Origin: Pristiophorus japonicus
Lineage: Eukaryota
NCBI RefSeq assembly: GCF_044704955.1
Contig: NW_027251843.1
Location: 1,116,001 to 1,180,000, forward strand
Length of the DNA: 64,000 nt
Direction: 5' to 3'
Shown here: in pieces, positions 1 to 22,634 of the stretch
How the letters are laid out: every line of letters starts with the position of its first letter
Position numbering within the stretch: the first letter of the stretch is position 1
Notes under the pieces: generated by a model
Seen by the model: the letters and a program-made list of their open reading frames with translations, nothing else
What the model was told of the DNA's origin: nothing
The model's database searches: none
Translations under genes and position numbers: made by a program

Positions 1-575
1 TGTCCGTTGTACCCCGTAGTGGACGGAATCCGCATTGTGACTCCGGCAGGAGCTCCTCAGCCACAGGGAGAAGACGGTTGAGGAGGATTCTAGCGATGAC
101 TTTCCCAATGGCTGATAACAGGGAGATTCCTCTGCTGTTGCCGCAGTCGAACTTGTCCCCTTTTTTAAAGATGGATCACGATTACTGCATCTCTGCGATC
201 TCCCGGCATGCTCTCCGCCCTCCTGATGAGAGAGATGAGGTCATGCATTCATGTCAATAGTGACGCTCTGCCATAAATTAATGCCTCAGCAGGGATTCCA
301 TCTGTCCCCGATGCCTTGTTGTTCTTGAGCTGACAGATGGCCTTTTCAACCTCGTGCAGGGCTGGGGTTTTACTGAGAAGGTGATGGGTAGCATGCTGCG
401 GGATGGAGTCGAGGACACTCAGATCTAAGGCAGATTCTCGATTAAGGAGATCTTCAAAGTGTTCCTTCCAGCAGGTTGTGACTGCCTCAGTGTCCTTGAT
501 GGGTGTCTCCTCGTTCTTGGCCAGCAGTGGGGTGGGGCCTTGGGTGCTTGGGCCGTAGGTGGATTGACTGCGGTG
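1..575 (-). mobile_element. RTE-clade LINE, reverse transcriptase fragment
   Basis: Minus strand translates to RGISLLSAIGKVIARILLNRLLPVAEELLPESQCGFRPLRGTTD, typical of RTE RT. Confidence 0.85.
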
Positions 576-829
576 TAAGTATTTTACCTACCCCTAAATC
601 CCTAAAATCCCGAACGCAAGGTCCCACTACCCATCGCCCATCCTCGGCCTACCTTCCAGGTCGACCTGCCTGCTGCCATGTCCCTCCAGCTGGACCCTCG
701 CTGCTCACTCCCCATTGGCCGACTCAGCTGCTCCAACCTATCCCGGCGAACTCAACGGCTGTGAGCCTCCGACCCGCCCCATCCACAGGTTTGGGCCCGA
801 CCTTCACTCCTCACCCTAACGTACGGGCC

Positions 830-1000
830 TCCCTCCCCCCCTCCCCCCCCCGGCGATGCTCGTGCCTCCCTCCCTCCCTCCCCCCGCCCCCCCCCCCCCA
901 GCGATGCTCGGGCCTCCCTCCCCCCCCCCCCGCCCCCCCCCCCCGGTGACACTCGTGCCTCCCTCGCCCCCGGCGACGCTCGGGCCTCCTTCCGGCCGCT
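830..1000. repeat. C-rich imperfect tandem repeat
   Basis: Recurring cggcga(t/c)gctcg(g/t)gcctccctcccccc units with poly-C runs. Confidence 0.7.
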
Positions 1001-1295
1001 GACCCCACTCAGCGGCGGAGTCCATGGTGAGCACAATGTCTGTGGTCTCTCTGACCTTTCCTCCTTCCACAAAATGGACCTCTGACCGTCACAATACCTG
1101 CCCTCAGACAGGCCTTGGTTTTCTCACTGAAGGGTGCCGCTCCTCCACTAGAGACCAGGAAACATGGCTCCTTCCTATTGGTTCTCCAAAGACTGAGCTT
1201 CGAACGCCACATCCTCTTATTTCCATCTCCAACGTTGCCCATCTCCGCCCTACATCAGCCCCTTGATGGAAGAAACCCATGGCTCTGCTTGGCTC

Positions 1296-1490
1296 TGTTG
1301 TGTATCTGTAAAGCATGCACTCCCATGTTCTGCCACCAGGGAGTACATCCCCTGAAGTCCCAAGGGATCCCAGCATCCCTTGGGAGCACTGTATATAAGC
1401 CAGCCCCTAAGGCCTGTTCCTCACTCTGGAGTGTCTTGATAAAGACTGAGGTCACTATTACTTTAACCTCCCTGTGTGCAGTCTCATCTC
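1296..1490 (+). mobile_element. Truncated solo LTR, Mag-like Gypsy family
   Basis: Starts TGTTG and has a TATA-like tatataag. Shares ccaagggatcccagcatcccttgggag and the overall layout with the Gypsy LTR at 54718-54940. Confidence 0.65.
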
Positions 1491-1669
1491 TAAACTCGAT
1501 TATTTCGTTGTCCCCTCCTGGCTTCCTTCATCCGCTCTCCATAAACCCCAACTTTCCAAAATGCAGTGTCCGTACCCTGCCTCACTCCAATATGAACCCT
1601 GACCTCACTGACCTACTGCCCCTGACCTCACTGACCTACTGCCCCTGACCTCACTGACCTCACTGACCC

Positions 1670-2135
1670 AGTGCGCTTACATATTGCAGTGTGGGCTGGC
1701 CCGTGCTGCCCCTGGGCCCTCGGCTCTTTTGGGCCGCGATCCCTCATTTGCCGCACCTCCACCACGATCCCTCACCGCTCCTCCGCCACCAACATTCGCC
1801 GCACCTCCGCCATGATCTCTCGCCGCACCTCTGCGCCAAACAGTCGCCTGACCTCCACCACGATCTCCCGCCGCACCTCCGCACCAAACATTTGCCGGAC
1901 TTCCGCCACGATCACCAACCGAATCTCAGCCACAATCCCTCATCGCTCCTCCACCTCGATCACTCACCACACCTCCCCGCGACCTTCCCACTCCTCTGCT
2001 TTACCTGGGTCCGCCGATGTTCCTGCCCACGCTCCAAATGCCGACCTGGGTCCTGATGACATCACCCAATCACCCACCTCGAAGCCATCGCTCACTTGGA
2101 GCTGCTCGCGCTGGAAGTTCTCATGGTATGATTGT
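1670..2135 (-). repeat. Unclassified interspersed repeat with internal short tandem units
   Basis: The start is the reverse complement of 7925-7975 (gcagtgtgggctggcccgtgct). It continues with degenerate cgcacctccgccac units. Confidence 0.55.
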
Positions 2136-2137
2136 AG

Positions 2138-4590
2138 TGGGTGATTTTAACCTGCACATTGATTTGACAAATCAAATTGGTCAGGGTAGCCTTGAAGAAG
2201 AGTTGATAGAGTGCATAAGGGACGGGTTCCTTGTACAGTATGTAAAGAAACTAACCGGGGGCAGGCTATCTTAGATCTGGTCTTGTGCAATGAGACAGGA
2301 TTAATAAACAATCTCCCAGTAAACGATCCCCTTGGAATGAGTGACCATATCATGGTTGAATTTCAAATTTAGATCGAGGGCGAGAAAGTTGAATCTCAAA
2401 CTAGTATACTAAGATTAAATAAAGGAGACTACAAAAGTATGAGGGCAGAGTTGGTTAAAGTGGACTGGGAAAATAGATTAAAATGTAGGACGGTTAATGA
2501 ACAGTGACGTACATTTGAGGAGATATTTAATCACTCTCAAGAAAAATATATTCCAGTGAGGAGGAAAGGATGTAAAAGAAAAGATAGCCATCCGTGGCTA
2601 ACTAAAGAAATAAAAGACGGTATCCAATTTAAAAACAAGGGCATACAAGGGCCAAAATTAGTGGGAGGACAGAAGACTGGGAAGCTTTTAAAATCCAGCA
2701 AAGAATGACTAAAAAAATGATTAAGAAATGGAAGATGAAAGTAAACTAGCACAAAATATAAAAACAGATAGCAAGAGTTTCTACAGGTATATAAAAAGGA
2801 AAAGAGCGGATAAAATAAATGTTGGTCCCTTAGAGGACGAGACCGGGGAATTAGACATGGGGAACATGGAGATGGCAGAAACACTGAGCAAATATTTTGT
2901 AGCAATCTTTACAGTAGAGGACACTAAAAATATCCCAACAGTGCATAGTCAGGGGTCTATGCGGGGGGGGGGGGGGGGAGGAGAGGAACTTCACACAATC
3001 ACAATCACTAAGGAGGTGGTTCTCAGTAAGATAATGGGACTAAAGGCGGATAAATCCACTGGACCTGATGGCTTACATCCTGGGGTCTTAAGAGAAGTAA
3101 CGACAGGGATAGTGGATGCATTGGTTGTAATTTACCGAAATTCCCTGGATTCTGGGGAGATCCCAGCAGATTGGAAAAATGCAAATGTAATGCCCATATT
3201 AAAAAAAGGATGCAGACAAAAAACAGGAAACTATAGAACAGTTGGGAAAATATTAAAGAAATAGTCGCAGGACATTTGGAAAATCATAATTCAGTCAGGC
3301 AGAGACAGAATGGATTTATGAAGGGGAAGTCATGTTTGACAAATTTGCTGGAATTCTTTGAGGATGTAATGAGCAGGGTGGATAAAGGGGAACCAGTGGA
3401 TGTGGTGTATTTGGATTTCCAGAAGGCATTCAATAAGGTGCCACATTAAAGGCACAGGATAAAAGTTCACGGAGTTGGTGGTAATATATAAACATGGATA
3501 GAGGATTGGCTAACTAACAGAAAACAGAGTCGTGATAAATGGTTCATTCTCGGGTTGGCAATCAGTCACTAGTGGGATGCTGCAGGAATCAGTGCTGGGA
3601 CCCCAATTATTTACAATCTCTATATCAACGACTTGGAAGAAGGGACCGAGTGTAATGTAGCCAAGTTTGCTGACAATATAAAGAAAGGAGTAAACACAAG
3701 GTATGAGGAGGAAACAAATAACCTGCAAAAGGACATAGACAGGCTAAGTGAATGGGCAAAAATTTGGGAGATGGAATATAATGTTGGAAAGTGTGAGGTT
3801 ATACACTTTGTCAGAAAAAAAATCAAAGAGCAAGTTATTATTTAAATGGAGAAAAATAACAAAGTGTTGCAGTGCAGCGGGAACTGGGGGTCCTGGTGCA
3901 TGAAACACAAAAGGTTATTACGCAGGTTCAGCAAGTGATCAGGAAGGCCAATGCAATCTTGGCCTTTATTGCAAAGGGGATAGAGTATAAATGCAAGGAA
4001 GTGTTTGCTACAGTTATACCGGGTATTGGTGAAGCCACAACTGGAATACTGCGTGCAGTTTTGGTTTCCATATTTAAGAAAGGATACACTTGCTTTGGAG
4101 GCATTCAGAGAAGGTTCACTAGGTTGATTCCGTAGATGAGGGCAATGACTTATGAGGAAAGGTTGAGTAGGTTTGGCCTACACTGAATGGAAATCAGAAG
4201 AATGAAAGGTGATCTTATCGAAACATGTAAAATTATGAGGGTGCTTGACAAGGTGGATGCAGAGGCTGTTTCCACTGATAGGGGAGACAAGAACTAGGAG
4301 GCATAATCTTAGAATAAGGGGCCGCCCATTTAAAACTGAAATGTGGAGGAATTTCTTCTCTGAGGGTTGTAAATCTGTGGAATTCGCTGCCTCAGAGAGT
4401 TGTGGAAGATGGGTCATTGAATAAATTTAAGACAGAAATAGACAGTTTCTTAACCGATAAGGGAATAAGGAGTTATGGAGAGCAAGCAGGGAAGTGGACC
4501 TGAGTCCATGATCGGATCAGCCATGATCATATTAAAAGGCGGAGCAGGCTCGAGGGGCCGCAGGCCTACTCCTGCTATTTCTTATTTTCT
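2138..4590 (+). mobile_element. CR1 LINE ORF2 (endonuclease end, RT, 3' UTR), decayed
   Basis: GDFNLHID, KADKSTGPDGLHP, KFADN and QRRFTRLIP pieces split by stops and frameshifts, followed by a CR1 3' tail. Confidence 0.93.
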
Positions 4591-5210
4591 AATCCCTCCT
4601 CCTCTCCAGCTCTCTCTCCTCCATCTAACGCCATTCTTTCACCCAGGCCTTCAATCACCCTTCCTAAAGCCCCCCGAACCCCCGCTCCCCACGTTCTTAC
4701 AGCAGCGATGTGAAGTGTCTTGTGACCTTTGGCACATTAAAGGCCCCAGATCAATGCAGACTGTGTGTGGATTTCGGGTGAGGACAGTGCTGGACACAGT
4801 GGTGAGGCCTCCTGCAGTCAGATATCCTGGTGATAGGGTCCAGGCTTACACACGTGGAATGAGGAAGTAGGTAAGGTCGGAATGTGCTGTCGGGGCCCAT
4901 GGAACTGGACCCCAGCATGAAGCCTTCCTCAGGAGAGGAGAGGGAATGTTCAGAGCCCTGGACTCCATTTCCCACACCAGGCATGTCCTGACCCAGTGAA
5001 TGAATGAGATGCCAATGTGGTGCCCAGGTTAGGGGCAGTCTAATGCTGTGGGCCCAGGTCTGCAAGAGGGAATTGGATATATACTTGAAAAGGAACAATT
5101 TGCTGGATTACGGGGAAATAGAGGCGGGGTGGGACTAATTGGGTAATTCTTTCAAAGAGCCGGCACAGGCACGATGGGCCGAATGGCCTCCTTCTGTGCT
5201 GTAAGATTCT

Positions 5211-5410
5211 CGGCTGTGAGCGCGGTTCACAGTTTTCTCCCGTGTCATTAACAGACGTACAGCTGTGACAACCTCCCTCTTTCACTTCCTCTGTGGGTGA
5301 AGTTTCATTCTTCCGATCTGACAGTCTCTTCAGTTATTTTTTGCACGGGGGATTTCTGCTGTGGTCTGAGTCTCTAATAATAACCGTCCAATCAGGCAGA
5401 ATAACAGCAG
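5211..5410 (-). promoter_or_regulatory. Candidate B-lymphoid enhancer, copy A (inverted duplicate of 15441-15640)
   Basis: E-box CAGCTG 5260-5265; TTTCACTTCC (reverse complement of EICE GGAAGTGAAA) 5280-5289; Runx-like TGTGGGT 5292 and TGTGGT 5360; kappaB-like GGGGATTTCT 5348-5357; CCAAT near 5388. Function is inferred. Confidence 0.55.
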
Positions 5411-5449
5411 CTAGGACCGCCTAGGACAGTGGACCCAGGCTCAGTGCTG

Positions 5450-5890
5450 ACCTTGCAACGTCCTCCTCACCAACATCTGGGGACTTGTGTCAAAAGTGGG
5501 ACAGCTGCCCCACAGACTAGTCAAGCACCAGCCTGACAAAGTCCTACTCACAGAATCATACCTTTCAGCCAATGTCCCAGACTCCTCCATCACCCGAGGT
5601 GGCAGCTCAGTGGTATACAGTCGGGAGGGAGTGGCCCTGGGAGTCCTCAACATTGACTCCGGACCCCATGAAGTCTCATGGCATCAGGTCAAACACGGGC
5701 AATGAAACCTCCTGCTGATTACCACCTCCCGCCCACCCTCAGCTGATGAATCAGTACTCCTCCATGTTGAACACCACTTGGAAGAAGCACTGAGAGTAGC
5801 AAGGGCACAGAATGTACTCTGGGTGGGGGACTTCACTGTCCATCACCAAGAGTGTCTCGGTAGCACCACTACTGACCGAGCTGGCCGAGA
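5450..5890 (+). mobile_element. LINE APE-endonuclease N-terminal fragment
   Basis: LVKHQPDKVLLTESYL and a GDF-type motif near 5825. A related piece (EPTRGKNLLDLVL) lies at 8390-8470. Confidence 0.7.
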
Positions 5891-5904
5891 GGGGCGATGC
5901 TGAC

Positions 5905-6950
5905 ATTGCAATCCCAGGTACCGGAGGACTGGAGGACTGCAAACGTGGTACCTTTGTTTAAAAAGGGAGAAAGGGATAGATCGAGTCACTACAGGTCAGT
6001 CAGCCTAACCTCGGGGGTGGGATAGGAGGAATCTTCATTTAACAAAACACGGATTAATCAAGGACAGTCAGCATGGATTTGTTAAGGGAAGGTCGTGTCT
6101 GAATGACTTGATTGAATTTTTTGAGGAGATAACCAGGAGGGTCGATGAGGGCAGTGCATATGATGCAGTGTATTTGGATTTTAACAAGGCTTTTGAGAAG
6201 GTCCCACACAGCAGACTGGTCACAAAAGTAAAAGCCCAGGGATCCAGGACAAAGTGACAAGTTGGATCCAAAATTGGCTCAGAGGCAGGAAGCAGAGGGT
6301 AATGGTTGATGGGTGTTTTTGTGACTGGCAGGCTGTTTCCAGTGGGGCTCGGCAGGGATCAGTGCTGGGTCCCTGGCTTTTTGTGGTATATATCAATGAT
6401 TTAGACTTGAATGTAGAGAGTATGATTACAGATGATACTAAGTTTGCAGATGATACTAAACTCGGCTATGGTTGATAATGAAGAAGAAAGCTGTAGACTG
6501 CAGGAAGATATCAATGAACTGTACCACAGCATTTTGTAATCTCTCCCCATTTAAATAATAATTTTTATTTTTCCTACCAAAGTGGATAACTTTACATTTT
6601 CCAACATTATACTCCATCTGCCATATCTTTGTCCACTCACTCAGCCTGTCTATATCCATTTGCAGAATCTTTGTGTCTTTCTCACAACTTGCTTTCTCAC
6701 CTATCTTTGTACATCAGCAAATTTGGTTACATTACACTCGGTCCCTTCATTCAAGTCATTAATTTCGGTTGTAAATAGTTGAGGCCCCAGCACTGATCCC
6801 TGCGGCACCCCACTAATTACAATTTGCCGACCTGAAAATGACCCATTGATCCCGACTCTCTGTTTGCTGTTAGTTAGCCAATCCTCTATCCATGCTAATA
6901 TATTACCCACAACCCCGTGAGCTCTTATCTTGGGCAGTAACCTTTTATGT
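5905..6950. mobile_element. Two opposed CR1 RT fragments (+ 5905-6520, - 6520-6950)
   Basis: QHGFVKGRSC and QGSVLGP motifs on +; GVPQGSVLGPQLF and KFADV on -. Confidence 0.88.
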
Positions 6951-7135
6951 GGCAAGGACGGCAGGTTTCCTTCCCTAAAGTATGTCACTGAACCAATTGG
7001 GCTTTTCTGACAATTTGACAGCTTTGTGGTCACTTTTACTGAGACCAGCTTTTTATTTCCAGCATTTAAAAAAGAGCTGAATTGAAATAGTCAAAGGGCC
7101 ATGGTGAGATTGTGGGGATTATTAGTGCAGGCCTG
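6950..7135 (-). mobile_element. tRNA-derived SINE fragment
   Basis: Similar to 63555-63715, which has a reversed B-box-like gtgggatttaaac. Confidence 0.5.
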
Positions 7136-7489
7136 TGGAGTGCTCTGCAGCAACATACCACGATATGACTGTACCCACAAGAGGTGTGTGTGCTGCTGGT
7201 GCCCGTGATCACAGGGCAATCATCGGCAAAGCAGCCCTGATAACATTCAGCTTTGGCTTTACATTGATCATTGTCCTGGATTGGTGCTGGGCACATCTCC
7301 TTGGGTTCTGTCCTCGGGTCTGGTGCTCACATTGTGCATACTATGGGGAGGTTGTGAGTGCATGATGTCACAATCAATGTTGACAATGTTCCTGTCTTGA
7401 TACATTGAGTATTCCCACCACTTCAAAGTTCTTGCCTTCAGTGTTTAATTAACAGTACGATTTCTTCGGACGAGACTTTAAACCGAGGG

Positions 7490-9600
7490 TACAGAGGATA
7501 TATGAGGATGTTGCCTGGACTGGAGAATTTTAACTATGAGGAACGATGGGATAGGCTGGGTTTGTTTTCTTTGGACAGAGGAGGCTGATGGGAGACCTGA
7601 TTGAGGTGTATAAAATTATGAGAGGCCTGGAAAGAGTTGGTAGGATGGACCTATTTCTGTTAGCCAGACACAAAAATATTACCTGAAATTGCTCTCTCCT
7701 ACAATAAAATAAGTTTTATTCCCATGTACAAAATCTTCAACAGAGCATGTAACTTTAATTATGCTTCAATTCATACTCAAGGAAGCAATGGTCTGTGCTT
7801 TGAACTCAGGGTTGGAGTTTCTGAATTTCCTCCTCCAGCTCAACAATCAGGGGGCATAGATTTAAAGTGATTAGAGGAGACTTGAGGGGAAATTTCTTCA
7901 CCCAGAGGGTCGTGGGGGTGTGGCCAGGGGCCCAGGGGTAGCACGGGCCAGCCCACACTGCGATATGTGTGCACACTCGGTCCGTACAGCAGAGCAGGTC
8001 TCCAGTCGTCTTGGTTAACCCTTGCCACTGGACCAAGACCTAGCTCTGTCGAGCCCGTGTGAAGGCTGGTGTGCAACGGTCACCACATGTTAAAAAAAAT
8101 CCACGCACAAGCATCCTCCACCCTTCAGGATGTAGGTCAGGACCTGGAATATTAGGTCCTTCATTAGTAGAGGCAGAAACCCTCACCACATTTAAAAAGT
8201 ACTTGGATGTTCACTTGAAGTTCCGTAACCTGCAGGGCTATGGACCCAGAGCTGGAAAGAGGGATTAGGCTGGATAGCTCTTTGTTGGGTGGCGCGGATA
8301 TGATGGTCTGAAACGGCCTCCTTCTGTGCTGTAAACCCCTGTGATTCTATGATTCTATGACATATCTGCCAGACTGGGCCCAGAGCAGGTGGGGAGAGAA
8401 CCAACACGAGGGAAAAACCTACTTGACCTCGTCCTCAACAATCTGCCTGTTGTAGATGCATCTGTCCATGATAGAATCATAGAAATTCACAGCACGGAGG
8501 GAATCCGTTTCGGCCTCTGCCAGCCAACCAAGAGCTATCCAGCCTCATCCCACTTTCCAGCTCTCTGTCCGTAGCCCTGTAACCTCTGCATCCTCTGCAC
8601 CCTTTCCAGTGCAATCACATCTTTCTTGTAATGTAATGTGGTGACCAGAACTGCACGCAGTACTCCTGCTGTGGCCTAACCAGTGTTTTATACAGTTCAA
8701 GCATAATGTCCTTGCTCTTGTATTCATGCCTCGTCTAATAAAGGCAAATATTCCACATGCCTTCTTAACCATCTTACCTTCCTGACCTGCTACCATCAGG
8801 AATCTGTGGACCTGTACTCCAAGGTCCCTTTGTTTCTCTGCACTTTTCAGTGTCGTACCAGTTAATGTGTATTCCCTTGCCTTGTTAGCCCTCCCCAAAT
8901 GCATTACCTCACACTACTCCGGATTGAATTCCATTTGCCACTGTTCTGCCCACCTGACCATTTCATTGATATCTTCCTGCAGTCTACAGCTTTCTTCTTC
9001 ATTATCAACCACACGGCCAATTTTAGTTTCAATTGCAAAATTCTTGATCATGCCCCTTACATTCAAGTCCAAGTCATTGATATATACCACAAAAAGCAAG
9101 GGACCTAGTACTGAGCCCTGCGGAACCCCACTGGAAACAGCCTTCCAGTCACAAAAACACCCGTTAACTATTACCCTTTGCTTCCTGCCTTTGAACCAAT
9201 TTTGGATCCAACTTGCCACTTTGCCCTGAAACCCATGGGCTTTTACTTTCATGAGCAGTCTTCCATGTGGGACCTTATCAAAAGCCTTGTTAAAATCCAT
9301 ACACACTACATCATATGCACTGCCCTCATCAATCCTCCTGGTTACCTCCTCAAAAAATTCATTTTATTCAGACACGATCTTCCCTTAACAAATCCATGCT
9401 GACTGTCCTTGATTAATCCGTGTCTTGTTAAATGAAGATTTATCCTGTCCCTCAGGATTTTTTCCAATAATTTCCCCACCACTGAGGTTAGGCTGACTGG
9501 CCTGTAATTACTCGGTCTATCCCTTTCTCCCTTTTTAAACAAAGGTACAACATTAGCAGTCCTCCAGTCCTCCGGCACCACACCTGTAGCCAGAGAGGCT
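7490..9600. mobile_element. Cluster of CR1 3' fragments (+ 7490-8360, interrupted; - 8470-9600)
   Basis: DFNKAFDKVPHGRL, GVPQGSVLGPLLF and NYRPVSLTSVVGK, with (attctatg)n tails. Confidence 0.88.
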
Positions 9601-10570
9601 CTGCATGCTTTCGGGTTTGGGACACATTTCGTCGCCCGGATCTGACTTTTGCACGTCGCCATGGATTGTCTGATTACGGTTAACGGGTCTTTGACGGCGT
9701 CCCTTTGCTTTGGGAAAGGGGTGTGCCAGGGATGCCCAATGCCTGGCCAGTTATATGCCATCTGCGTGGAGCCTTTCCTGCGCCTCTTGCGGAAGAGGTT
9801 GACGGGACTGGCTCTGTAATGGCCGGGCATGGAGGTTGTCCTCTCGGCTTACACTGATGATGTGCTCCTCATGGTCAAGGATTCCATTGACCTACTGAGG
9901 ATGCATGAGTGCCAGGAGATTTACTCGGCCGCATCCTCCGCCAGGATCAATTGGGAGAAATGTTCCGGACTCCTGGTCGGTCACTGGCAGATGAACTCCC
10001 TGCCAGAGGAGTTCAGGTCTTTTGCCTGGAGCATGACCCATCTCCTCTAAGCCTGGCCGGTGAACTGGCAGGAGCTGGAGGACAAAGTTGCCGCTCGCCG
10101 AGGGCGCTGGACAGGACTGTTCCAAGTGCTGTCCTACAGGGGTCGAGCGCTAGTCATAAACCAGCTAGTGGCCGCTATGCTGTGGTACTGGCTGGTCACT
10201 TTGCCCCCCCCCCCCCGGCCCTGCTTTTGTCGCCAAGATACAGAAGAAGCTGGTGGACTTCTTCTGGATAACAGGAAGCACTGGGTCTCTGCTGTGGTTC
10301 TGAGTCTCCTACTTAGGGAGGGCGGTCAGGCGTTGGTGTGCGTCAGTACCCAGCATGCGACTTTCCGTCTTCAGATCCTGCAGAGATACCTGTACGTCGA
10401 GCCCCTTCCTAGATGGTGTGCGCTGATGACATATTTCTTCCGCCAGCAGTACTGCCTCAATTATGGCACGCAGCTCCTGTTTGTGAGCCTGGGGGCATCA
10501 GGAGCACCATGCGTGGCTGCATGTCTTTTACCAGGAACTCATCAGGGTCTGAAACAGTGTTGCCACCAAG
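9600..10570 (+). mobile_element. Tx1-clade (L1 group) LINE RT fragment
   Basis: GVCQGCP..GQLYAICVEPFL, SAYTDDVLL, SSARINWEKC and LSYRGRALVINQL are characteristic Tx1/L1 RT motifs. Confidence 0.85.
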
Positions 10571-10830
10571 CGAGGAGGTGCAGAGGGGGTAGAGATGTTC
10601 TCTATCCAAGGGAGCGAGGAGGCTGCACCAGACAAACGTTTCAAAGGCAGTGAGACCAGGACCTGAGGACCTGGATGCAGTGCCACCAAATGTTCAATGA
10701 CCTAACGGAGTGGTCAAGGTCAGAGAATTCATCTTCAAAGTCCGTGTCCCACCAACAGCACCACTAGCCTCACACGCTGCTCAATGCACCACGCCCCCAT
10801 CACCCACCTGCCAACAAACTCTAGCAATCA
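10570..10830 (+). mobile_element. Probable Harbinger Myb/SANT ORF fragment
   Basis: RTWMQCHQMFNDL resembles the RTxxQCRKKFNDL motif of Myb/SANT-like proteins. Confidence 0.5.
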
Positions 10831-11279
10831 GGACTCATACACAAGAATATAAGGAAAAGGAACAGGAGTGGGCCGTACGGCCTCTCGAGCTGGTCCACCA
10901 TTCAATAAGGTAATGGCTGATCTGATCTTGGCCTCAACTCCACTTCCCCACCTGTTCCCCACAACCCGTGACTCCCCGTAGTTCAAGAATCTGTCTATCT
11001 CCATCTTAAATATATTCAATGACCCAGCCTCCACAGCTCTCTGGAATAGAGATTTCCGAAGATTCACGATTTTATTTCAGCACTGTGGCCAAGAGGACGC
11101 TGTGATGGTCAGTAACAGAGAGACGGTAAGGAATGGGACTAAAGTTGAAAAGGGATTGGAGATGTGGTCACTGGGACCACAGGCGGATGATTCGATCCCG
11201 GATATCCCGGCCAGAAAGTGGCTGTCTGGGTTGCCTCCTTCCTTCCACTTCCTCTCCTCCCTTTGCGAGCAGAAGCTGG

Positions 11280-11405
11280 AAATCTGAAATAAAGACAGTA
11301 AATGCTGGAAATACTCAGCAGGTCAGACAGCAGCTTGAGCTGAAACGTTAATTCTGTCTCTCTCCATGGATGCTGCCTGACCTGCTGAGTATTTACAGCA
11401 TTCTC
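11280..11405. repeat. Palindromic interspersed repeat (possibly Penelope-derived)
   Basis: aatgctggaaatactcagcaggtcagacagca is nearly the reverse complement of tgctgcctgacctgctgagtatttacagcatt. Confidence 0.55.
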
Positions 11406-11887
11406 AGTCTTTCCAGGGACCTTTCTTTACCACCCAAGGCCTTTAACACGTCCAGCAGCACCCCTTGCATTCCCTGCACACTGAGAAAATATTTAACATT
11501 TATTGCACCAAGCTACTACTTCCATAAAATATATTGTTTAAAACAGACCAGAGCTTAAATGCCAACATACCTGAAAGATGTGTGCCCCGTTAAGAAGCAC
11601 CAACAGCATCTGTGCAGGGCTGCTTCACGCCTGCTTTTCTGTGTGTGCTTAGGGCAGGGCTATATGGTGAGCGCCAACGCCCCAATTAACAGTCATGGCT
11701 CGAGCCAGGCATTGGTGTCACCATCTGACAATCCACACTGTGAGGCGAGTGCTGCCAACGACAGCGGTACGGCCCTTACCAAAATGGTGGATGACGTGTC
11801 CCGGGCCGCAAGCAAGGCGGCTGCGATTATTTGAACAAAACCCTCTTATTGGCTGGTGCTAGACCAGGGAAATTCTCGGCCAAAGAA

Positions 11888-14800
11888 TCATAAGAACATA
11901 AGAAATAGGAGCAGGACTAGGCCATTTGGCCCCTCGAGCCTGCTCCGCCATTCAATAAGATCATGGCTGATCTGATAATGGGCTCAGCTCCACTTCCCTG
12001 CCTGCTACCCAGAACCCTTTACTGCCTTATCGTTCAAAAATCCATCTACCGCCACCTTCAATATATTCAATGACCCAGCCTCCACAGCTCTCTGGGGCAG
12101 AGAATTGCACAGATTTACAACCCTCTGAGAGAAGAAATTCCTCCTCATCTCAGTTCCAAATGACCGACCCCTTATACTTAAACTCTGCCCGCTCGTTCTA
12201 GGTTCCCGTATGAGTGGAAACATCCTCACTGCATCCATCTTGTCGAGTCCCCTCAGAATCTTATATGTTTCAATAAGTTCATCTCTCATACTCTTTGGAG
12301 TTTACAAGAATATGTGGAGCAGGCGTGGAAGTTGAGCTGAGTGCATGATCAGATCAGCCATGACCTTATTGAATGGCGGAGGGGCCGTATGTCTTACACC
12401 TGTTCCTATTTCTTATGTTCTGATTAACCTGCTCAACCTTTCTTTATAAGTCAGCCCCTTCATCTCAGGAATCAACCTTGTGAACCTTCTCTGAACTGCC
12501 TCCAGTGCAAATATATCCCTCCTTACATAAGGAGACCAAAACTGTACACAATACTCTCGGTGTGGTCTCACCAATACCCTGTACAGATGTAGCAGGACTT
12601 CTCTGCTTTTATACTCCATCCCCCTTGCAATTAAGGCCAACATTCCATTTGCTTCCTGATTACTTGCTGTATCTGCATACTAACTTTTTGTGTTTCATAC
12701 ACAAGGGCCCCCAGGTCCTTCTGTACTACAGCATTTTGTAATCTTTCTCCATTTAAATAATAATTTGCTCTTTGACTTTTTACACTCCATCCGTTCATCC
12801 AAGTTATTAATATAGATTGTAAATAGGTGAGGCCCCAACACCGATCCCTGTGAAACCCCACTAATTACTGGTTGCCGACCAGAAAATGACCCATTTATCT
12901 TGACTCTCTGTTTTCTGTTAGTTAGCCAATCCTCGAACCATGCTAATGTATTAGCACCAACCCCGTGTTCTCTTATCGTGTGCGGTATTCTTTTATGTGG
13001 TACCTTATTGAATCCCTTCTGGAAATCCAAATACACCGCATCCACTTGTTCCCCCATATCCACCCTGCACATTACTTCCTCAAAGAACTCCAGCAAATGT
13101 GTCAAACATGATTTCCCTTTCATAAGTCCATGCTGACTCTGCTTGACTGAATTATGCTTTTCCAAATGTCCTATTACTGCTTTCTTAATAATGGACACCA
13201 GCATTTTCCCAACGACAGATGTTAGGTTAACTGGTCTATAGTTTATTGTTTTCTATCTCCTTCCTTTTGTAAATAGGGTCGTTATATTTGCGGTTTTCCA
13301 ATCTGCTGGGACATCTCCAGAATCCAGGGAACTTTGGTAGATTTACATAGAAACATCGGAAATAAGTGCAGGAGTAGGCCATTCGGCCCTTCGAGCCTGC
13401 ACCACCATTCAATAAGATCATGGCTGATCATTCCCTCAGTACCCCTTTCCTGCTCTCTCTCCATATCCCTTGATCCCCTTAGCAGTAAGGGCCATATCTA
13501 ACTCCCTCTTGAATATACCTAATGAACTGGCATCAACAAACCTCTGCGGCAGAGAATTCCACAGGTTAACAACTCTCTGAGTGAAGAAGTTTCTCCTCAT
13601 CGCAGTCCTAAATGGCCTACCCCTTATCCTAAGACTGTGTCCCCTGGTTCTGGACTTCCCCAACATCGGGAACATTCTACCCACATCTAACCTGTCCAGT
13701 CTCGTCAGAATTTTATCTGTTTCTATGAGATCCCATCTCATCCTTCTAAACTCCAGTGAATACAGGCCGAGTTGATCCAGTCTCTCCTCATATGTCAGTC
13801 CAGCCATCCCGGGAATCAGTCTGATGAACCTTCGCTGCACTCCCTCAATAGCAAGAACGTCCTTCCTCAGATTAGGAGACCAAAACTGAACACAATATTC
13901 CAGGTGAGGCCTCACTAAGGCCCTGCACAACTGCAGTAAGGCCTCCCTGCTCCTGTACTCCAATCGCCTAGCAATGAAGGCCAACATACCAAATGCCTTC
14001 CTCACCGCCTGCTGTACCTGTATGCCAACTTTCAATGACTGATGAACCATGACACCCAGGTCTCGTTGCACCTCCCCTTTTCCGAATCTGCCACCATTCA
14101 GATAATATTCTGTCTTCGCATTTTTACCCCCAAAGTGGATAACCTCACATTTATCCACATTATACTGCATCTGCCATGCATTTGCCCACTCACCTAACCT
14201 GTCCAATTCACCCTGCAGCCTCCTAGCATCCCTCTCACAGCTCACACTGCCACCCAGTTTAGTGTCATCTGCAAACTTGGAGATATTACACTCAATTCCT
14301 TCATCCAAATCATTGATGTATATTGTAAAGAGCTGGTGTCCCAGCACTGAGCCCTGTGGCACTCCACTAGTCACTGCCTGCCATTCTGAAAAGGACCAAT
14401 TTATCCCGACTCTCTGCTTCCTGTCTGCCAACCAGTTCTCTATCCGCGTCAGTATATTACCCCCAATACCAAGTGCTTTGATTTTGCACACCAATCTCCT
14501 GTGTGGGATCTAGTCAAAAGCCTTTTGAAAGTCCAAATACACCACATCCACTGGTTCTCCCTTGTCTACTCTCCCAGTTACATCCTCAAAAAATTCCAGA
14601 AGATTTGTCAAGCATGATTTCCCCTTTATAAATCCATGCTGACTTGGACCAATCCTGTCACTGCTTTCCAATTGCGCTGCTATTTCATCCTTAATAATTG
14701 ATTCCAACATTTTCCCCACTACTGATGTCAGGCTAACCGGTCCATAATTACCCACTTTCTCTCTCCCTCCCTTTTTAAAAAGTGGTGTTACATTAGCTAC

Positions 14801-15160
14801 CCTCCAGTCCAAAGGAACTGATCCAGAGTCAGTAGACTGTTGGAAAATTATCACAAATGCATCCGCTATTTCTAGGGCCACATCCTTAAGTACTCTGGGA
14901 TGCAGACTATCAGGCCCCGGGGATTTATCGGCCTTCAATCCCATCAATTTCACTTACACAATTTCCTGCCGAACAAGGATGTCCTTCATTTCCTCCTCCT
15001 CACTAGACCCTCTGATGCATTTCAACCAATGCATCCACTATCTCTGCAGCCACTTCATTGAAGAGCGTAGGATGCAGGCCATCAGGTCCAGGGGACTTGT
15101 CCACCTTTAGTTCCATTATTTTACCGAGTAACTTTTTCTCTCGTGATAGTGATTGTTTTC
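11888..15160 (-). mobile_element. Nested CR1 LINE fragments, including a little-decayed RT segment (13436-14953)
   Basis: The 147-aa and 352-aa ORFs carry GVPQGSVLG, KFADDTKL and RPHLEYCVQFWSP. Several (ttctatgt)n-type tails are present. Confidence 0.93.
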
Positions 15161-15440
15161 TCAGCACAGACTCTTTCACACCCAGAACTTCAATACAAAC
15201 TGTTCTTCAAACGGGTTCCTGCTTAAGGATTCACGGATTTCGGGGGCAGGAAGGTCAGTGGTGGGGGTGCAGTAGGACATTGGCTGAAAGGTCTGATTCT
15301 GTGAGTAGGACTATGTCAAACTGGTGCTTGACTAGTCTGTGGGGCAGCTCTCCCACTTTTGGCACAAGTCCCCAGATGTTGGTGAGGAGGACGTTGCAGG
15401 GTCAGCACTGAGCCTGGGTCCGCTGTCCTAGCCGGTCCGA

Positions 15441-15640
15441 GCTGCTGTTATTCTGCCTTATTGGACAGTTATTATTAGAGACTCAGACCACAGCAGAAAT
15501 CCCCCGTGCAAAAAATAACTGAAGAGACTGTCAGATCGGAAGAATGAAACTTCACCCACAGAGGAAGTGAAAGAGGGAGGTTGTCACAGCTGTACGTTTG
15601 TTAATGACGCGGGAGAAAACTGTGAACCGCGCTCACAGCC
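15441..15640 (+). promoter_or_regulatory. Candidate B-lymphoid enhancer, copy B, about 5.9 kb upstream of the C exon
   Basis: Runx ACCACA 15487; reverse kappaB-like AGAAATCCCC 15495-15504; IRF-like GAATGAAACT near 15542; EICE GGAAGTGAAA 15563-15572; E-box CAGCTG 15587-15592. Confidence 0.55.
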
Positions 15641-15734
15641 TAGAATCTTACAGCACAGAAGGAGGCCATTCGGCCCATCGTGCCTGTGCCGGCTCTTTGA
15701 AAGATTTACCCAATTAGTCCCACTCCTCCTCATT

Positions 15735-18700
15735 TTATGAACATACGAAATAGGAGCAGGAGTAGGCCACACAGCCCCTCGAGCCTGCTCCACCATTTAA
15801 TACGATCATGGCCAATCCGATCATGGACTCAGGTCAACTTCCCTGCCCGCTCCCCATAACCCCTTATTCCCTTATTGGTTATGAAACTGTCTATCTCTGT
15901 CTTAAATATATTCAATGACCCAGCCTCCACAGCTCTCTGAGGCAGCAAATTCCACAGATTTACAACCCTCTGAGAGAAGAAATTCCTCCTCATCTCTGTG
16001 TCCTCTACCGTAAAGACTGATACAAAATCATTGTTCAGAGTTTCTGCCATCTCCATGTTCCTCATCACTAATTCCCTGGTTTTGTCCTCTCAGGGACCAT
16101 CATTTACTTTAGCCACTCTTTTCCTTTTTATATACCGATAGAAACTCTTGCTATCTGTTTTTATATTTTGTGCTCGTTTACTTTCATCGTCTATCTTCCC
16201 TTTCTTAATCATTTTTTTAGTCATTCTTTGTTGGCTTTTAAAAGCTTCCCAATCTTCTGTCCTTCCATTAGTTTTGGCCACTTTGTATGCCCTTGTTTTT
16301 AATTGGATACCGTTCTTTATTTCTTTAGTTAGCCGCGGATGGCTATCTTTTCTTTTGCACCCTTTCCTCCTCACTAGAATATATTTTTCTTGAGAGTTGT
16401 GAAATATCTCCTTCATATGTACGCCACTGTTCATCAGCCGTCCTACACTTTAATCTATTTTCCCAGTCCATTTTAGCCAACTCTGCACTTATACCTTTGT
16501 AGTCTCCTTTATTTAAGCTTAGTACGCTGGTTAGAGATCCATCTTTCTCACCCTCCATCTGAATTTGAAATTGAACCATGTTATCATCACTCAGTCCAAG
16601 GGGATCCTTTACTGGGAGATTGTTTATTAATCCTGTCTCATTACACAGGACCAGATCTAAGATAGCCTGCCCCCTGGTTGGTTCCATTACAGACTGCTCA
16701 AGGAACCCGTCCCTTATGTACTCTATGAACTCTTCCTCAAGACTACCCTGACCAATTTGATTTATCCAATCAATGTGGAGGTTAAAATCACCCATAATTA
16801 TTGCTGTTCCATTTTTACAAGCCCCCACTATTTCTTGGTTTATACTCCGACCAACAGAGTTGCTACTGTTAGGGGACCTATAGACTATGCCCACCAGTGA
16901 CTTTTTCCCCTTATTATTCCTTATCTCCTCCCAAACAGTTTCAACATCCTGATCATTTGAGCCAATATAATTTCTCACTATTGCAGTAATTCCATCCTTT
17001 GTCAACAGAGCTACCCCACCTACTTTACCTTTCTGTCTGTCCTTTCCGGATTGTCAAGGACTCCTGAGTATTTAGTTCTCAGTCCTGGTCACCTTGCAAC
17101 CACGTCTCTGTAATGGCTATCAGATCATATTCATTTGTATCTATTTGTGCCATCAACTCAGCTATTTTGTTATTTAGGCAAAGAGCCTTTAAATTTGTTT
17201 TTTTACCGTTTTTATCTGCTTGTTTCCTCTCTCCTTCAAACTCACTTTCCTTATTTTTGCTTTCTAATTCCAGCTTTACTCCCCTCCCTACTGAATCTAT
17301 TCTCCAGTTCCCATCCCCCTGCCAAGCTATTTTAATCCCTCCCCAACAGCACGAGCAAATGCTCCCCTCGAGGATATTGGTCCCGGCTCTGTTGAGGAGC
17401 AACCCGGTCGGCTTGTACAGGTCCCACCTCCCCCAGAAGAGGTCCCAATGCCTCAGGAACCTAAAGCATCTCGCCTGCACCATCTCTCCCGTCACGCATT
17501 CATCTGCTCTATCCTCCTATTTCTGTATTCACCAGCTCGTGGCACCGGGAGTAATCCGGAGATTAGAGAATACTTAGAGATTAAAGATTCTGAGAGAAGA
17601 AATTCCTCCTCATCTCAGTTTTAAATGGGCGGCCACTTATTCTAAAATTAAGGCCCCTAGTTCTAGTCTCCCTTATCAGTGGAAACATCCTCTCTGCATC
17701 CACCTTGCATGGCCCCTCATAATCTTACATGTTTTGATAAGATCACCTCTCATTCTTCTGAATTCCAATGAGTCGAGGCCCAACCTACTCAACTTTTCTT
17801 CAAAAGACAACTCCCCTCATCTCTGGAATTAACCTAATGAACCTTCTCTGAACTGCCTCCAAAGCAAGTCTATCCTTTCTTAAATATTGAAGCCAAAACT
17901 GCACGCAATATTCCAGCTATGGCCTCACCAATATCTTGTATAACTGTAGCTAGACTTCCCTGCTTTTGTACTCCATCCCCATTGCATTAATGGCCAAGAT
18001 TCCATTGGCCTTCCTGATCACTTGCTGTACCTGCATACTATCCTTTTGTGTTTCATGCACAAGTACCCCCAGGTCCCGCTGTACTACAGCACTTTGCAAT
18101 TTTTCTCCATTGGAATAATAACTTGCTCTTTGATTTTTTTCTGCCAATGTGCATAACCTCACACTTTCCAACATTATACTCGATCTGCCAAATTTTTGCC
18201 CACTCACTTTGCCTGTCTATGTCTTTTTGCAGGTTTTTTGTATCCTCATCACACATTGCTTTTCCTCCCACCTTTGTATTATCAGCAAACCTGGCTTGAA
18301 ACCCCACATGAAACAGCCTTCCAGTCACAAAAACACCCGTTGATCATTACACTTTGCTTCCTGCCACTGAGCCAATTTTGGATCCAACTTGCCACTTTCC
18401 CTTGGATCCCTGGGCTTTTTACTTTTCTGCCATGTGAGACCTCACCAAAAACCTTGCAAAAGTCCATGTGTACGACATCAAAGATGCAAAACTCATCGAC
18501 TCTCCTTGTTATCTCCGCAATAAATTAAATCAAGTTCGTCAGGCACGACCTTCCCTGAATAAATCCATGCTGACTGTCCTTGATTAATATGTCCCTTTCT
18601 ATATGACAATTATTGTTTTCAATAATTTTCCCTCCACCAAGGTTCGGCTGACTGGCCTGTAATTACTCGGTCTATCCTTTTCTCACTTTTCAAACAAAGG

Positions 18701-19920
18701 TACACGTTAGCAGTCCTCCAGTCCTCTGGCACCACACTTGTAGCCAGAGTAGATTGGAAAATGATGGTCAGAGCCTCTGCTATATCCCCACTTGCTTCTC
18801 TTAAAAGCCTGGGATACATTTCATCCGGGCCTGGTGATTTTTCTACGATCAAAGATGCTATGCTCCTTAATACTTCTTCTCTCACTATGTTTATCTCATC
18901 AAATATTTCACACTTGTCCTCCTTAATTACAATGTCTGCATCATCCCTCTCTTCTGTGAAGACAGATGCAAAATATTCATTAAGAACCATTCCCCCGTCT
19001 TCCGCCTCCACACACAGGGTACCTTTTTGGTCTCCAATAGGCCCAAATCTTTCTTTCTTTATCCTCTTGCTCATTATGTATTTATAAAACATCTTTGAGT
19101 ATTCCTTGATTTTACTTGCCAGTATTTTTTCATGCCCTCTCTTTGCATTTCGAATTTCCTTTTTAATTTCACCCCTGCACTTTCTATGCACCTCTGGGCT
19201 TTCTGCAATATTTAGCTCTGGGTATCTGACATAAGCTTCCCTTTTTTGCCATAACCTATCCTGAATGCCCTTTGCCATCCAGGGGGCTCTAGATTTGGGA
19301 GTGCCACCCTTTTCCTTTGTGGGAACATACTTGCTCTGAACCCTCACTATCTCCCCCTTGATTGCCTCCCACTGCTCTGACACTGATTTACCTTCAAGTA
19401 GCTGTTTCCAGCCCACTTTTGCTAAATCACCTCTCAGCTTAGTAAAATTGGCCTTTCCCCAATTGAGAACCTTTATTCCTGCTCTACCTTTGTCCTTTTC
19501 CATAACTACACTAAATCTAACTGAATTATGATCACGAGCACCACAATGCTCTCTCACTGATCTCCCTTCCACCTGCCCAGCTTCATTCCCAAAAACTAAG
19601 CCCAGAACCGCGCCTCCCTTGCTGGGCTTGCTACGTACTGGCTGTAAAAGTTCTCCCGAATGCATTTGAAGAATTCTGCACCCTCTATACCTTTGACATG
19701 ATTCCATCCCAGTTAATGTGAGGGGAGTTGAAATCCCTGACTATTGCTGCCCGATTGTTTTTGCACTTCTCAGCAATTTGCCGACATATTTTCTCTTCTA
19801 TCTCCCTCTGACTGTTTAGGGGTCTATAGTACACTCCCAGCAGTGTGATCGTCCCTTTTCTGTTCATCAGTTTAAACCATATGGCCTCATTTGATGATCC
19901 TTCAAACATATCCTCCCTCT
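15735..19920 (-). mobile_element. CR1 LINE fragments (ORF1 esterase end, endonuclease, RT, tails)
   Basis: GLLLNRAGTNIL (ORF1 end), IAITETWL, VYRSPNS, GDFNLHIDW and EKSPGPDEMYPRLL. Confidence 0.92.
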
Positions 19921-20670
19921 GTCAGAGGTGCCGTCTTTCAGATGAGACGTTAAACCGAAGTCCCATCTGCCCTCTTAAGTGAACATGAAAGATCTCATAA
20001 TCATTATTGGAAGGGCATGGGGGTTCTTCCCAGTGTCCTGGCCAATATTTATCCCACAACTAACATAGTTAAAGCCGATGATCTGGTCATGATCTCATTG
20101 CAGTCTGGGAGCTTCATAGAATCAGAGAAATTTACAGCATGAAAGGAGGCCGTTCGACCCATCGTGTCTGCACTGGCCGGCAAAGATCTATCCAGCCTAA
20201 TCATACTTTTCAGCTCTTGGTCCGTAGCCCTGTCGGTTACAGCACTTCAAGTGTACATCCAAGTAATTTTTAAAAGTGATGAGAGTTTCTGCCTCTACCA
20301 CCCTTTCAGTCAGTGACTTCCAGATCCCCACCCCCTCTGGGTGAAGATATTTCCCCTCAAATCCCCTCTAAACCTCCTAGCAATTACTTTAAAATCTATG
20401 CCCTGGTTGTTGGCCAATCTGCTGAAGGAAATAGGTCCATCCTATCCACTCTATCTCGGCCCCTCATAATATTATACAACTCAATAAGGTCTCCCCTCAG
20501 ACTCCTATTCCAAAGAAAACAACCCCAGCCTATCCAATCTTTTTTCAGAGCTAAAATTTTCCAGTCCAGGCAACATCCTCGTAAATCTTCCTGTGTACAA
20601 TTGGTTGTAAAGCACCTTGGGACATCCTGAGGTTGTGAAAGGCGCTATATAAATTCAAGGCTTTCTTTCA
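19920..20670 (+). mobile_element. Deu-domain SINE fragment interrupted by a CR1 3' tail (-, about 20116-20595)
   Basis: Deu core ggtgccgtctttcagatgagacgttaaaccg. The SINE tail resumes near 20600. Confidence 0.75.
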
Positions 20671-20829
20671 TTGAAGTGGGAGGGCCCTGATCCTGACCCT
20701 CGGCCATTGTCCACGCACTCTGACCTTCCAGGAGATCACGGGATCATTGGGAGCAGTGACCCTGCCTGACCCTGGTACACTGAGGCTAATTGTAGCCTCA
20801 CCCTTGACCTCACCCCAGTATGATTTTGA

Positions 20830-21295
20830 GCATCAGCCGTGGCTCAGTGCGTTGCACTCTCGCCTCTGATTCAGAATGTTGTGGGTTCAAGTCCCATACC
20901 AGGCACTTGAGCACAAAAATCTAGGCTGACACTGCAGGGCAGTGCTGAGGGAGTGCAACACTGTTGGAGGTGTCGTCTTTCAGATGAAATTTTAAACTGA
21001 GGCCTCGTCTGCCCTCTCAGGTAGATGTAAAAGATCCAATGACCCTATTTTGAAGAAGAGCAGGGGTGTTCTCCCCGGTGCCCTGGTCAATATTTATCCC
21101 TCAACCAACATGACAAAAGAACAGATTATCAATCATTATCACATCCCTGTTTGTGGGAGCTTGCTGTGCGCAGATTGACTGCCGTGTTTCCCACATTACA
21201 ACAGTGACGACACTCCAAAAGTACTTCATTGGCTGAAAAGTGCTTTGAGATGTCCGGTGGTTGTGAAAGGCATAATATAAATGAAAGATTTTTTT
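20830..21295 (+). mobile_element. Near full-length tRNA-headed Deu-domain SINE (SacSINE1-like)
   Basis: A-box gtggctcagtg, B-box gggttcaagtccc, Deu core, LINE-type tail and T-run. Confidence 0.85.
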
Positions 21296-21534
21296 TTTTA
21301 AAAACCTTAACTTCAAACGCATTTATATTTATATTAAACTTATCAAGCGAGGCAAAGAAGATTAAGAGTTAGTGTTGCTCACCTCTAATGGTTAATCGCC
21401 AGCCATGAGTTCATTAACCCAACTCTCCGTTATCAGATGTGAATTATCCCCACACGGAAACACCCACAGTGACACACACACACATACACACACATGAATA
21501 TACACCTATTAAACATCCTTCTCCTCCCTTTCAG

Positions 21535-21863
21535 GCCGAGGGAAGACACCACCCACACTGACCCTGCTGCCCCCCTCCCCGGAGGAGCTCACGACCAAGG
21601 GCACTGCCACCCTGGTGTGCCTCGCCGATCACTTCTACCCCGATGCGGTGGAGATGGAGTGGAAGAAGGACGGGGCGACCATTTCGGCCGGGGTCCAGAC
21701 CAGCGACTACCTGCGAGCTTCGGACAACACCTACAGTGTCAGCAGCCTGCTGACCCTCTCTGGCTCCGACTGGGAGTCCAACGCCAGCTTCTCCTGCAGC
21801 CTCACCCACGAGAGCCTCTCCTCTCCCCTCAGCAAGGGAGTCAGGAGAGCAGAATGTGCGTAG
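21535..21863 (+). CDS. IGKC: Immunoglobulin light-chain constant exon, kappa (NS4/type III)-like
   Basis: Acceptor ccttctcctccctttcag, phase 1. Translation RGKTPPTLTLLPPSPEELTTKGTATLVCLADHFYPDAVEMEWKKDGATISAGVQTSDYLRASDNTYSVSSLLTLSGSDWESNASFSCSLTHESLSSPLSKGVRRAECA*. C1-set Cys/Trp/Cys and the terminal interchain Cys are intact. The kappa isotype rests on recalled similarity to nurse shark NS4. Confidence 0.93.
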
Positions 21864-22400
21864 TGTGTCAGGGACAGTCCGCGGGGGAGACGCAACTTTA
21901 AATAGAACAGGGGGTGAGCCGGGAGGGCAAAGGTCATTGTCAGCACTGCATTTCTACTCTCTTCCTTCTCGGGACTGGGTCAGGGAAAGCATCTGAGTGT
22001 CAGGGGGTAAGGCACATTATTGGGGCAGTGTCGAGGGAGCTTTACTCTGTATCTAACCCGTGCTGTACCTGCCCTGGGAGGGTTTGATGGGACAGTGTTG
22101 ACTCGTGCTGCCAAGTAAAACCTCTCGAAAATGCTGAAGACTGTCAGCAGAGTAAAATTAATGTTAAACTACGAAGTGCTGCTTCAGTGAGCAGACCCCC
22201 TCCCTGCTCACCCTGCTGTTACAATTCAAGGTTTAGTCCCCGTTTAAAGGGACAGGAAAATCCCCACAACTGTTTTAATAAAGCTGCATTCTCCCTGTGA
22301 ATGTCTCCAGCTCGCTCTCGCTGGGCTGTTTATTCAAGTCTTGTTTCTGTAAATGTGAATCTGTAAAAGGCAATAAACGTGAATAATATTCAGTCTGTGT
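21864..22400 (+). terminator. IgL 3' UTR with polyadenylation signals
   Basis: AATAAA near 22277 and 22372, the second followed by GT-rich sequence. Confidence 0.65.
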
Positions 22401-22634
22401 CTGGCGAGTGCTTTGGAAATGTCCCACCTCCCCCTCAGCTGGATTGGCTGCATTTCAGTAAGTGTCTGTCCTGATTGGCTGAGTGGGCTGTCAATCAATG
22501 GCATGTCGGCAGGAGATTTGATTCAAAGCCAATTATCAATCATTTTAAAACGATCAATTTGACCTCGAACCCCTGGAGTGCACAAGATGAAACACAGAGA
22601 CACTAAAAGCTGCTGGGATTAAACCATCCCAGTC

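Follow-up and report, generated by a model that had tools for sequence, protein, structure and literature searches.

The inverted duplicate and its invariant block

The stretch of Pristiophorus japonicus DNA considered here (64,000 nt, positions 1,116,001 to 1,180,000 of contig NW_027251843.1 in assembly GCF_044704955.1; hereafter the window) is rich in long interspersed nuclear elements (LINEs) and carries a kappa-type constant (C) exon of an immunoglobulin (Ig) light chain. Upstream of this exon lies an inverted duplicate, the centre of which is tentatively identified as a B-cell enhancer. The arms of the duplicate, copy A (5116-5577) and copy B (15275-15736), were found in a repeat search of the window; they are 462 nt long, 96% complementary and 9.7 kb apart (Table 1). 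BLAST gives an identity of 95.9% over 462 columns, and an ungapped comparison 20 mismatches in 462 positions, a position in copy B being 20852 minus the corresponding position in copy A.

An earlier reading of these letters without other data (the sequence-only reading) had placed the arms at 5125-5578 and 15273-15727, and had described about 128 identical bp (5256-5383) next to a flank of 165 bp, mostly LINE-derived, with about 10 differences. Apart from small shifts in the limits, this description is borne out. The longest run without a mismatch between the copies is 130 nt, 5255-5384 (15468-15597 in copy B), and the 193 nt to its right (5385-5577) hold 12 mismatches, with an abundant LINE beginning at 5427. 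When 20 mismatches were placed at random over 462 positions in 200,000 simulations, a clean run of at least 130 nt was uncommon (P = 0.023). This run alone stands out within the duplicate; the whole core that surrounds it is not significantly cleaner than the transposable element (TE) sequence on either side.

A wide palindrome around the repeat was considered and rejected: in BLAST of positions 1-10400 against 10400-24000, the only collinear inverted matches, apart from the 462-nt repeat, come from LINE pieces (88%) that belong to a single family. The arms therefore share only these 462 nt within the window, and BLAST finds no further copy of 5212-5800 anywhere in the LINE-rich 64 kb.

The sequence-only reading had also supposed that the duplicate is linked to Ig light-chain genes, and the C exon agrees with this. 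The exon is intact; its coding part, 21534-21860, matches the Pfam C1-set family (E = 5.1e-24), and the best matches of its last 47 amino acids in a PDB search are kappa constant regions, aligned to DSTYSLSSTLTLSK...SSPVTKSFNRGEC; a PDB search with the whole domain is uninformative as to isotype, multi-domain heavy chains ranking first. The exon lies in cis to both copies, at distances of 5.8 kb (copy B) and 16 kb (copy A), and on its own strand copy B is upstream of it. It is the only C exon in the window, as tblastn with the exon finds no second one. Motif scans in six frames of the 64 kb found no variable (V) segment (Cys-Trp-Cys / YYC, WYQQ), no joining (J) segment (FGxG) and no recombination signal sequence, which leaves the C exon an orphan. 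The proposal that copy B sits in a J-C intron does not survive this result; two LINEs make up most of the 5.8 kb from copy B to the exon.

Motif content of the invariant block

Five motif classes are packed within 124 nt of the block, in both copies: an E-box, a composite Ets-IRF (PU.1-IRF) site, a kappaB-like site, a RUNX site and a MEF2 site. The sequence-only reading had listed a perfect Ets-IRF composite, CAGCTG, two Runx-like sites, an IRF-like half site and a 9/10 kappaB site; all of these can be located in the block, and the MEF2 site CTAATAATAA was missing from that list. The two Runx-like sites are of unequal standing, since TGTGGT at 5360-5365 fits the consensus, while TGTGGG at 5292-5297 does not and is altered at 5295 in two of the other organisms compared below (B and D). 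Likewise, the IRF-like half site AGTTTCA is present at 5301-5307 and is altered in the same two organisms at 5303.

The rarity of these sites differs greatly from class to class. On both strands of the window, the two copies hold both of the composite sites and two of the four MEF2 matches, but only two of 58 E-boxes, two of 95 RUNX sites and none of the nine strict kappaB matches. Their combination is confined to the duplicate: at least four of the five classes occur together in 144 of 63,850 windows of 150 nt, every one of them in the two copies. Sequence simulated with an order-3 Markov model of the window (21 Mb) yielded 1366 composite sites and no four-class cluster, defined as a composite site, an E-box, a kappaB site (at least 9/10) and a MEF2 site within 150 nt. 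The block contains no octamer. The single ATGCAAAT of the window, at 3179, lies within a LINE open reading frame (ORF), and a reading of the block as a V promoter was rejected.

Anatomy and copy number of the unit

The make-up of the duplicated unit was examined with Logan contigs of four organisms (A to D, A being the source species), placed on 4900-5800 at 80% likeness. Contig depth is not copy number, and the estimates of repetition that follow are rough. Between two TE pieces, 5055-5210 and 5427-5800, which have summed depths of 10^4-10^7, lies a core of 216 nt (5211-5426), whose summed depth is 717-2891 in A and 36-197 in B, falls to 30-47 in D and is about 0 in C. The core is three to four orders of magnitude below its flanks, and the boundaries are sharp, with steps at 5210 and at 5427-5457; at the latter the depth in B, C and D goes from 0-56 to 26,000-74,000. 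The left-hand piece belongs to a family with summed depths of up to 10^7, thousands of copies of which terminate elsewhere at 5203-5210. The right-hand piece (summed depth 10^4-10^6) is the start of a LINE, and its translation gives the first endonuclease motifs. High copy number, independent flanks and termini of their own are therefore features of the two flanking pieces and not of the core. With the depth of contigs that represent single diverged LINE copies as a yardstick (2.6-14.5 in A, 16.6-19.9 in D), the core seems to be repeated some 50-100 times in A and about twice in D. It had been foreseen that the core might turn out to be a high-copy repeat unlinked to Ig loci; it is not a dispersed high-copy repeat, being low-copy in B and D and uncovered in C, and an Ig C exon lies nearby.

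Beyond the left-hand TE piece, the depth of 4900-5054 is close to that of the core (874-1041 in A, 48-107 in B, 30-97 in D). BLAST finds no partner of the flank 4594-5115 anywhere in the window. One contig of D covers the TE tail, the core and the LINE start (5184-5443) with 19 differences and a 17-nt deletion, and the junction of TE tail and core is common to copy A, copy B and this contig. Because the depth of the flank tracks that of the core, and because the contig of D spans both junctions, the unit, old TE pieces included, is on this evidence a segment that was copied as such, not by transposition, and that predates the split of A and D.

Surrounding sequence

LINE fragments lie in both orientations between and around the copies, and Pfam matches to RVT_1 occur in 4 of 7 ORFs; in a separate set of 4 proteins, 1 matches Exo_endo_phos_2. 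Insertions of LINEs interrupt copy B at 15274/15275 and at 15736/15739. The LINE at 2138-4593, outside copy A, is probably an insertion independent of its relative at 15739-16794, since the truncation points of the two differ. Long open LINE ORFs on the minus strand (13436-14494, 352 aa; 18619-19707, 362 aa) suggest that some insertions are fairly young.

Just upstream of the C exon, 19919-21296 holds short repeats that are probably dispersed. Their matches to 28.9-29.8 kb and, inverted, to 60.0-60.6 kb might have marked the scaffolds of lost clusters; this idea was abandoned, as the matches are not collinear and several pieces hit the same target. Further away, a chain of inverted matches between 26408-31025 and 54941-62877 (91-95%, in pieces of 200-540 nt) forms a large inverted duplication. 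Two tandem arrays lie at 31168-31680 and 33034-33501, of which one repeats every 33 nt (11 registered copies) and the other every 52 nt (7 copies, up to 98% alike). The first 2000 nt of the window are GC-rich (58%), are strongly C-skewed (GC skew -0.28) and contain proline-rich pseudo-ORFs, and a 58-nt piece at 1662-1719 is repeated in inverted orientation at 7928-7985.

Table 1. Features of the duplicate, of its motifs and of the neighbouring sequence (positions in the window; TE, transposable element; SINE, short interspersed nuclear element; letters A to D without 'copy' denote organisms)
Feature	Position	Strand	Remarks
Copy A	5116-5577	+	TE tail, non-TE core and LINE 5' start; 20 mismatches to copy B
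Copy B	15275-15736	-	Later LINE insertions cut both sides
Invariant block of copies A and B	5255-5384		130 nt; contains all five main motifs (5260-5383)
E-box CAGCTG	5260-5265 (copy B 15587-15592)		No listed difference in B or D
Ets-IRF (PU.1-IRF) composite GGAAGTGAAA	5280-5289 (copy B 15563-15572, plus)	-	Only two GGAANNGAAA matches in 64 kb
Non-consensus Runx-like TGTGGG (5292-5297) and IRF-like AGTTTCA (5301-5307)	5292-5307		Both altered in B and D (5295 G>T, 5303 T>C)
kappaB-like GGGGATTTCT	5348-5357 (copy B 15495-15504)	+	9/10 of GGGRNWYYCC
RUNX consensus TGTGGT	5360-5365 (copy B 15487-15492)	+	Motif scan
MEF2 consensus CTAATAATAA (YTAWWWWTAR)	5374-5383 (copy B 15469-15478)		Motif scan
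Non-TE core	5211-5426		216 nt; summed contig depth 717-2891 in A, low-copy in B and D, uncovered in C
LINE/SINE 3' tail, very abundant family	5055-5210	+	Part 5116-5210 common to copy B; further copies in window
Abundant LINE 5' start	5427-5900	+	Endonuclease N-terminus NIWGL...LLTESYL...GDFTVHH; up to 5577 common to copy B
Non-TE flank of copy A	4594-5054		No counterpart beside copy B
LINE 522 nt outside copy A	2138-4593	+	Same family as 15739-16794 (88%), other truncation points
LINE, 5'-truncated end cutting copy B at 15274/15275	13348-15274	-	RVT_1 in 13436-14491 and 14510-14950
LINE, 3' end adjoining copy B	15739-17580 (upper boundary approximate)	-	Internally deleted relative to the LINE at 2138-4593; Exo_endo_phos_2 in 16343-17005
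Second LINE between copy B and C exon	17590-19919	-	BLAST
Orphan Ig light-chain constant exon, kappa-type	21534-21863	+	Coding to 21860; splice acceptor ttcag/G; ends ...RRAECA then stop

Comparison with known Ig enhancers

According to the text and legends of PMC3972084, the Ig-lambda enhancers of human, mouse and chicken share strikingly conserved E-box, NF-kappaB, MEF2 and PU.1-IRF4 motifs, which are retained while the sequence between them is not, and which are required for activity, mutation of the sites impairing it. Since this set of four was defined independently there, it is not a choice of our own. The same compact set as in mouse E-lambda2-4 and E-lambda3-1, human hIg-lambdaE and chicken cIg-lambdaE is found within 5260-5383 and its counterpart in copy B, with a kappaB site of 9/10. 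In addition, the composite 10-mer of the lambda-B site of mouse Ig-lambda2-4, as it is given in Table 1 of PMC4872103, is identical to the shark GGAAGTGAAA.

Read on the strand on which PU.1 precedes IRF, the shark block has its kappaB/MEF2 pair before the composite site and its E-box after it, and the mammalian enhancers also have an E-box downstream of PU.1. However, on the motif order and spacing that can be drawn from the text and legends of PMC3972084, kappaB and MEF2 stand in reverse order, the upstream E-box of the Ig-lambda enhancers is lacking, and the downstream E-box is 14 nt away instead of about 50. The shark block also differs in its intercalated RUNX site, in its imperfect kappaB site and in being linked to a kappa-type gene. 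The Ig-lambda enhancers lie downstream of C, whereas the shark copies occupy a spacer, copy B being 5' of the orphan C exon.

The mammalian Ig-kappa enhancers offer a partial match. The 3' enhancer shares the PU.1-IRF4 composite, the E-box, NF-kappaB and the linkage to a kappa C gene, but it lies 3' of C-kappa and MEF2 is not among the conserved sites listed for it in the legend of Figure S5 of PMC3972084. The intronic enhancer, as described in the same legend, shares NF-kappaB and an E-box, the former imperfect in the shark; it has no PU.1-IRF composite, and its position in the J-C intron has no equivalent in the window, where J segments, V segments and recombination signals are lacking. The sequence-only reading had seen in the block a mixture of intronic-type and 3'-type kappa motifs. 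This assignment can be refined: the set of PMC3972084 fits better, and the Ig-lambda enhancer is the closest known system.

Duplication of a light-chain enhancer also has a parallel. The mouse shadow enhancers E-lambda3-1s and E-lambda2-4s are described in PMC3972084 as duplicates within the locus that are 95% identical and keep their factor sites, much as the shark copies are 96% alike. The mouse elements, however, arose directly from the duplication of the lambda locus and lie 20-25 kb downstream of the canonical ones, whereas the shark copies are inverted and 9.7 kb apart.

Alternative explanations

The interpretation to which we incline, at slightly less than an even chance, is that the core is a non-TE island of 216 nt between two old TE pieces and part of the repeat unit of a kappa-type cluster, that its invariant 130-nt centre is a candidate B-cell enhancer, and that the cluster was duplicated head-to-head. 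Taken as a whole, the block makes a credible candidate enhancer that is partly supported. Evidence for constraint is modest. Organisms B and D both have the core, their listed differences leave the five main motifs untouched, and the clean run between copies A and B is nearly coextensive with the motif span (5260-5383). In D, 12 differences are listed between 5241 and 5400, and all of them miss the 42 motif positions among these 160 (P = 0.026, or 0.047 without RUNX). With 19 differences over 243 positions, the core contig of D is cleaner than a flank contig, which has 31 over 224 (P = 0.037).

A number of points weigh against the enhancer interpretation. The counts of motif avoidance take in listed differences only, 62 others being unlisted, and cover two other species; the contrast between core and flank in D weakens to P = 0.087 on listed differences; and each of the conservation tests reaches only P = 0.02-0.05 and was picked post hoc. 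Contigs lose rare variants, and a single core contig in A is no proof that the copies are identical. Between copies A and B, the non-TE core has 7 mismatches in 216 positions (3.2%) and the TE flanks 13 in 246 (5.3%), which is not a significant difference (Fisher P = 0.36). Shark genomes evolve slowly, and an identity of 92% between species need not imply constraint. Gene conversion may be the source of the identical block and would look alike between copies A and B. At 5254, the contigs of organism A bear the letter of copy B; with two copies only, selection and conversion are indistinguishable. The kappaB site matches its consensus at 9 of 10 positions, two motifs of the sequence-only reading (its second Runx-like site and its IRF-like half site) are altered in B and D, and the position of copy B, 5' of an orphan C exon, is unlike that of known Ig enhancers. 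Finally, the depth in the source species, and in no other, climbs stepwise from 717 through 989 and 1420 to 2891 over 5334-5426, where some LINE copies possibly carry part of the core.

Several of these points would suit a neutral passenger, that is, a piece of the kappa-cluster unit whose identical 130 nt are a conversion tract or due to chance and whose motif cluster is fortuitous. With a divergence of just 4% between the copies, a clean run of this length is not extreme, as the simulation above indicates (P = 0.023), the comparison of core with TE flanks is not significant, and the motif classes were picked after the fact. LINEs adjoin both ends of copy B, and since 15739-16794 is just 88% like its relative by copy A, the arms are perhaps older than 96% identity would indicate, which would be a sign of homogenisation; concerted evolution is well established for multi-copy Ig clusters. 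We nevertheless regard this explanation as somewhat unlikely. The clean block is coextensive with the motif span, the listed differences in two other species spare the motifs, and conversion between copies A and B leaves the conservation in D unexplained. Moreover, the four-motif set was published independently, as the text of PMC3972084 indicates, and did not arise once in 21 Mb of simulated sequence.

An origin of the core from a TE, in which the motifs would serve the element, is improbable. The core would then be the promoter or another upstream portion, rarely represented among copies, of the LINE whose start is near 5427, or would belong to a different, composite element. It does immediately precede a LINE endonuclease start that lacks an ATG, the stepwise depth in A continues to 10715 towards the LINE in the manner of 5'-truncated families, and about 10^2 copies are compatible with a set of full-length elements. 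Yet the LINE is equally abundant in B, C and D, where the depth falls from 26,000-74,000 to 0-56 at 5427-5457, and the core has about two copies in D and is uncovered in C. The sequence beyond the TE tail (4900-5054) follows the depth of the core in three species, the junction of TE tail and core is common to copies A and B and the contig of D, and the LINE-filled window holds no other copy. A retroviral long terminal repeat was also rejected, the core and its flank being unmatched elsewhere in the window and the copies being inverted, not direct. There is equally little to expect from a regulatory element of another kind, such as a boundary element or a promoter of a sterile (germline) or non-coding transcript in the head-to-head spacer. 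The block does sit in a spacer that separates arms of opposite orientation, and it is motif-dense and conserved, but it has no octamer, the only one in the window being that in the LINE ORF at 3179, and no Rfam family matches 4000-17000 at E <= 0.1, a result on which an RNA gene was also rejected.

Proposed mechanism

If the block is a B-cell enhancer, then, to judge from its tetrapod Ig analogues, a pair of PU.1/SpiB and IRF4/8 would bind the composite site GGAAGTGAAA, and E2A would bind CAGCTG, 14 nt from it. About 58 nt to the other side of the composite, the tight group of Rel/NF-kappaB-like, RUNX and MEF2 sites would be bound by the corresponding factors. Jointly, these proteins would make the neighbouring cluster accessible to transcription and V-J joining, and perhaps to somatic hypermutation. 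We infer that a cluster was duplicated long ago in inverted, head-to-head orientation and that each copy marks one arm. The right arm would have lost its V and J segments and kept only the C exon, and the left arm may serve an intact cluster just beyond the window; the enhancer would lie upstream of V.

Implications for shark Ig loci

Sharks have many separate Ig clusters, and the choice and activation of a few of them still await explanation. Enhancers of Ig light chains in Atlantic cod, a fish with cluster-type loci, were reportedly described by Bengten et al. in 2000. For shark IgH genes, the available part of PMC2435157 proposes that infrequent formation of promoter-enhancer complexes limits the number of active genes, and names no shark element. 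No description of a shark light-chain enhancer turned up in the literature searched. A defined candidate of 130 nt with five named sites renders the question of cluster activation testable.

A wider possibility, which we think quite unlikely as it stands, is that the E-box/NF-kappaB/MEF2/PU.1-IRF4 grammar of tetrapod Ig-lambda enhancers was already present in cartilaginous fish on clusters of the kappa type. It would then represent an ancestral light-chain enhancer of jawed vertebrates, possibly including the targeting of hypermutation, and the presence of one copy in each head-to-head arm could let a B cell activate few of its many clusters. Should the block prove active, the Ig-lambda type of enhancer grammar would be dated to before the split between cartilaginous and bony vertebrates.

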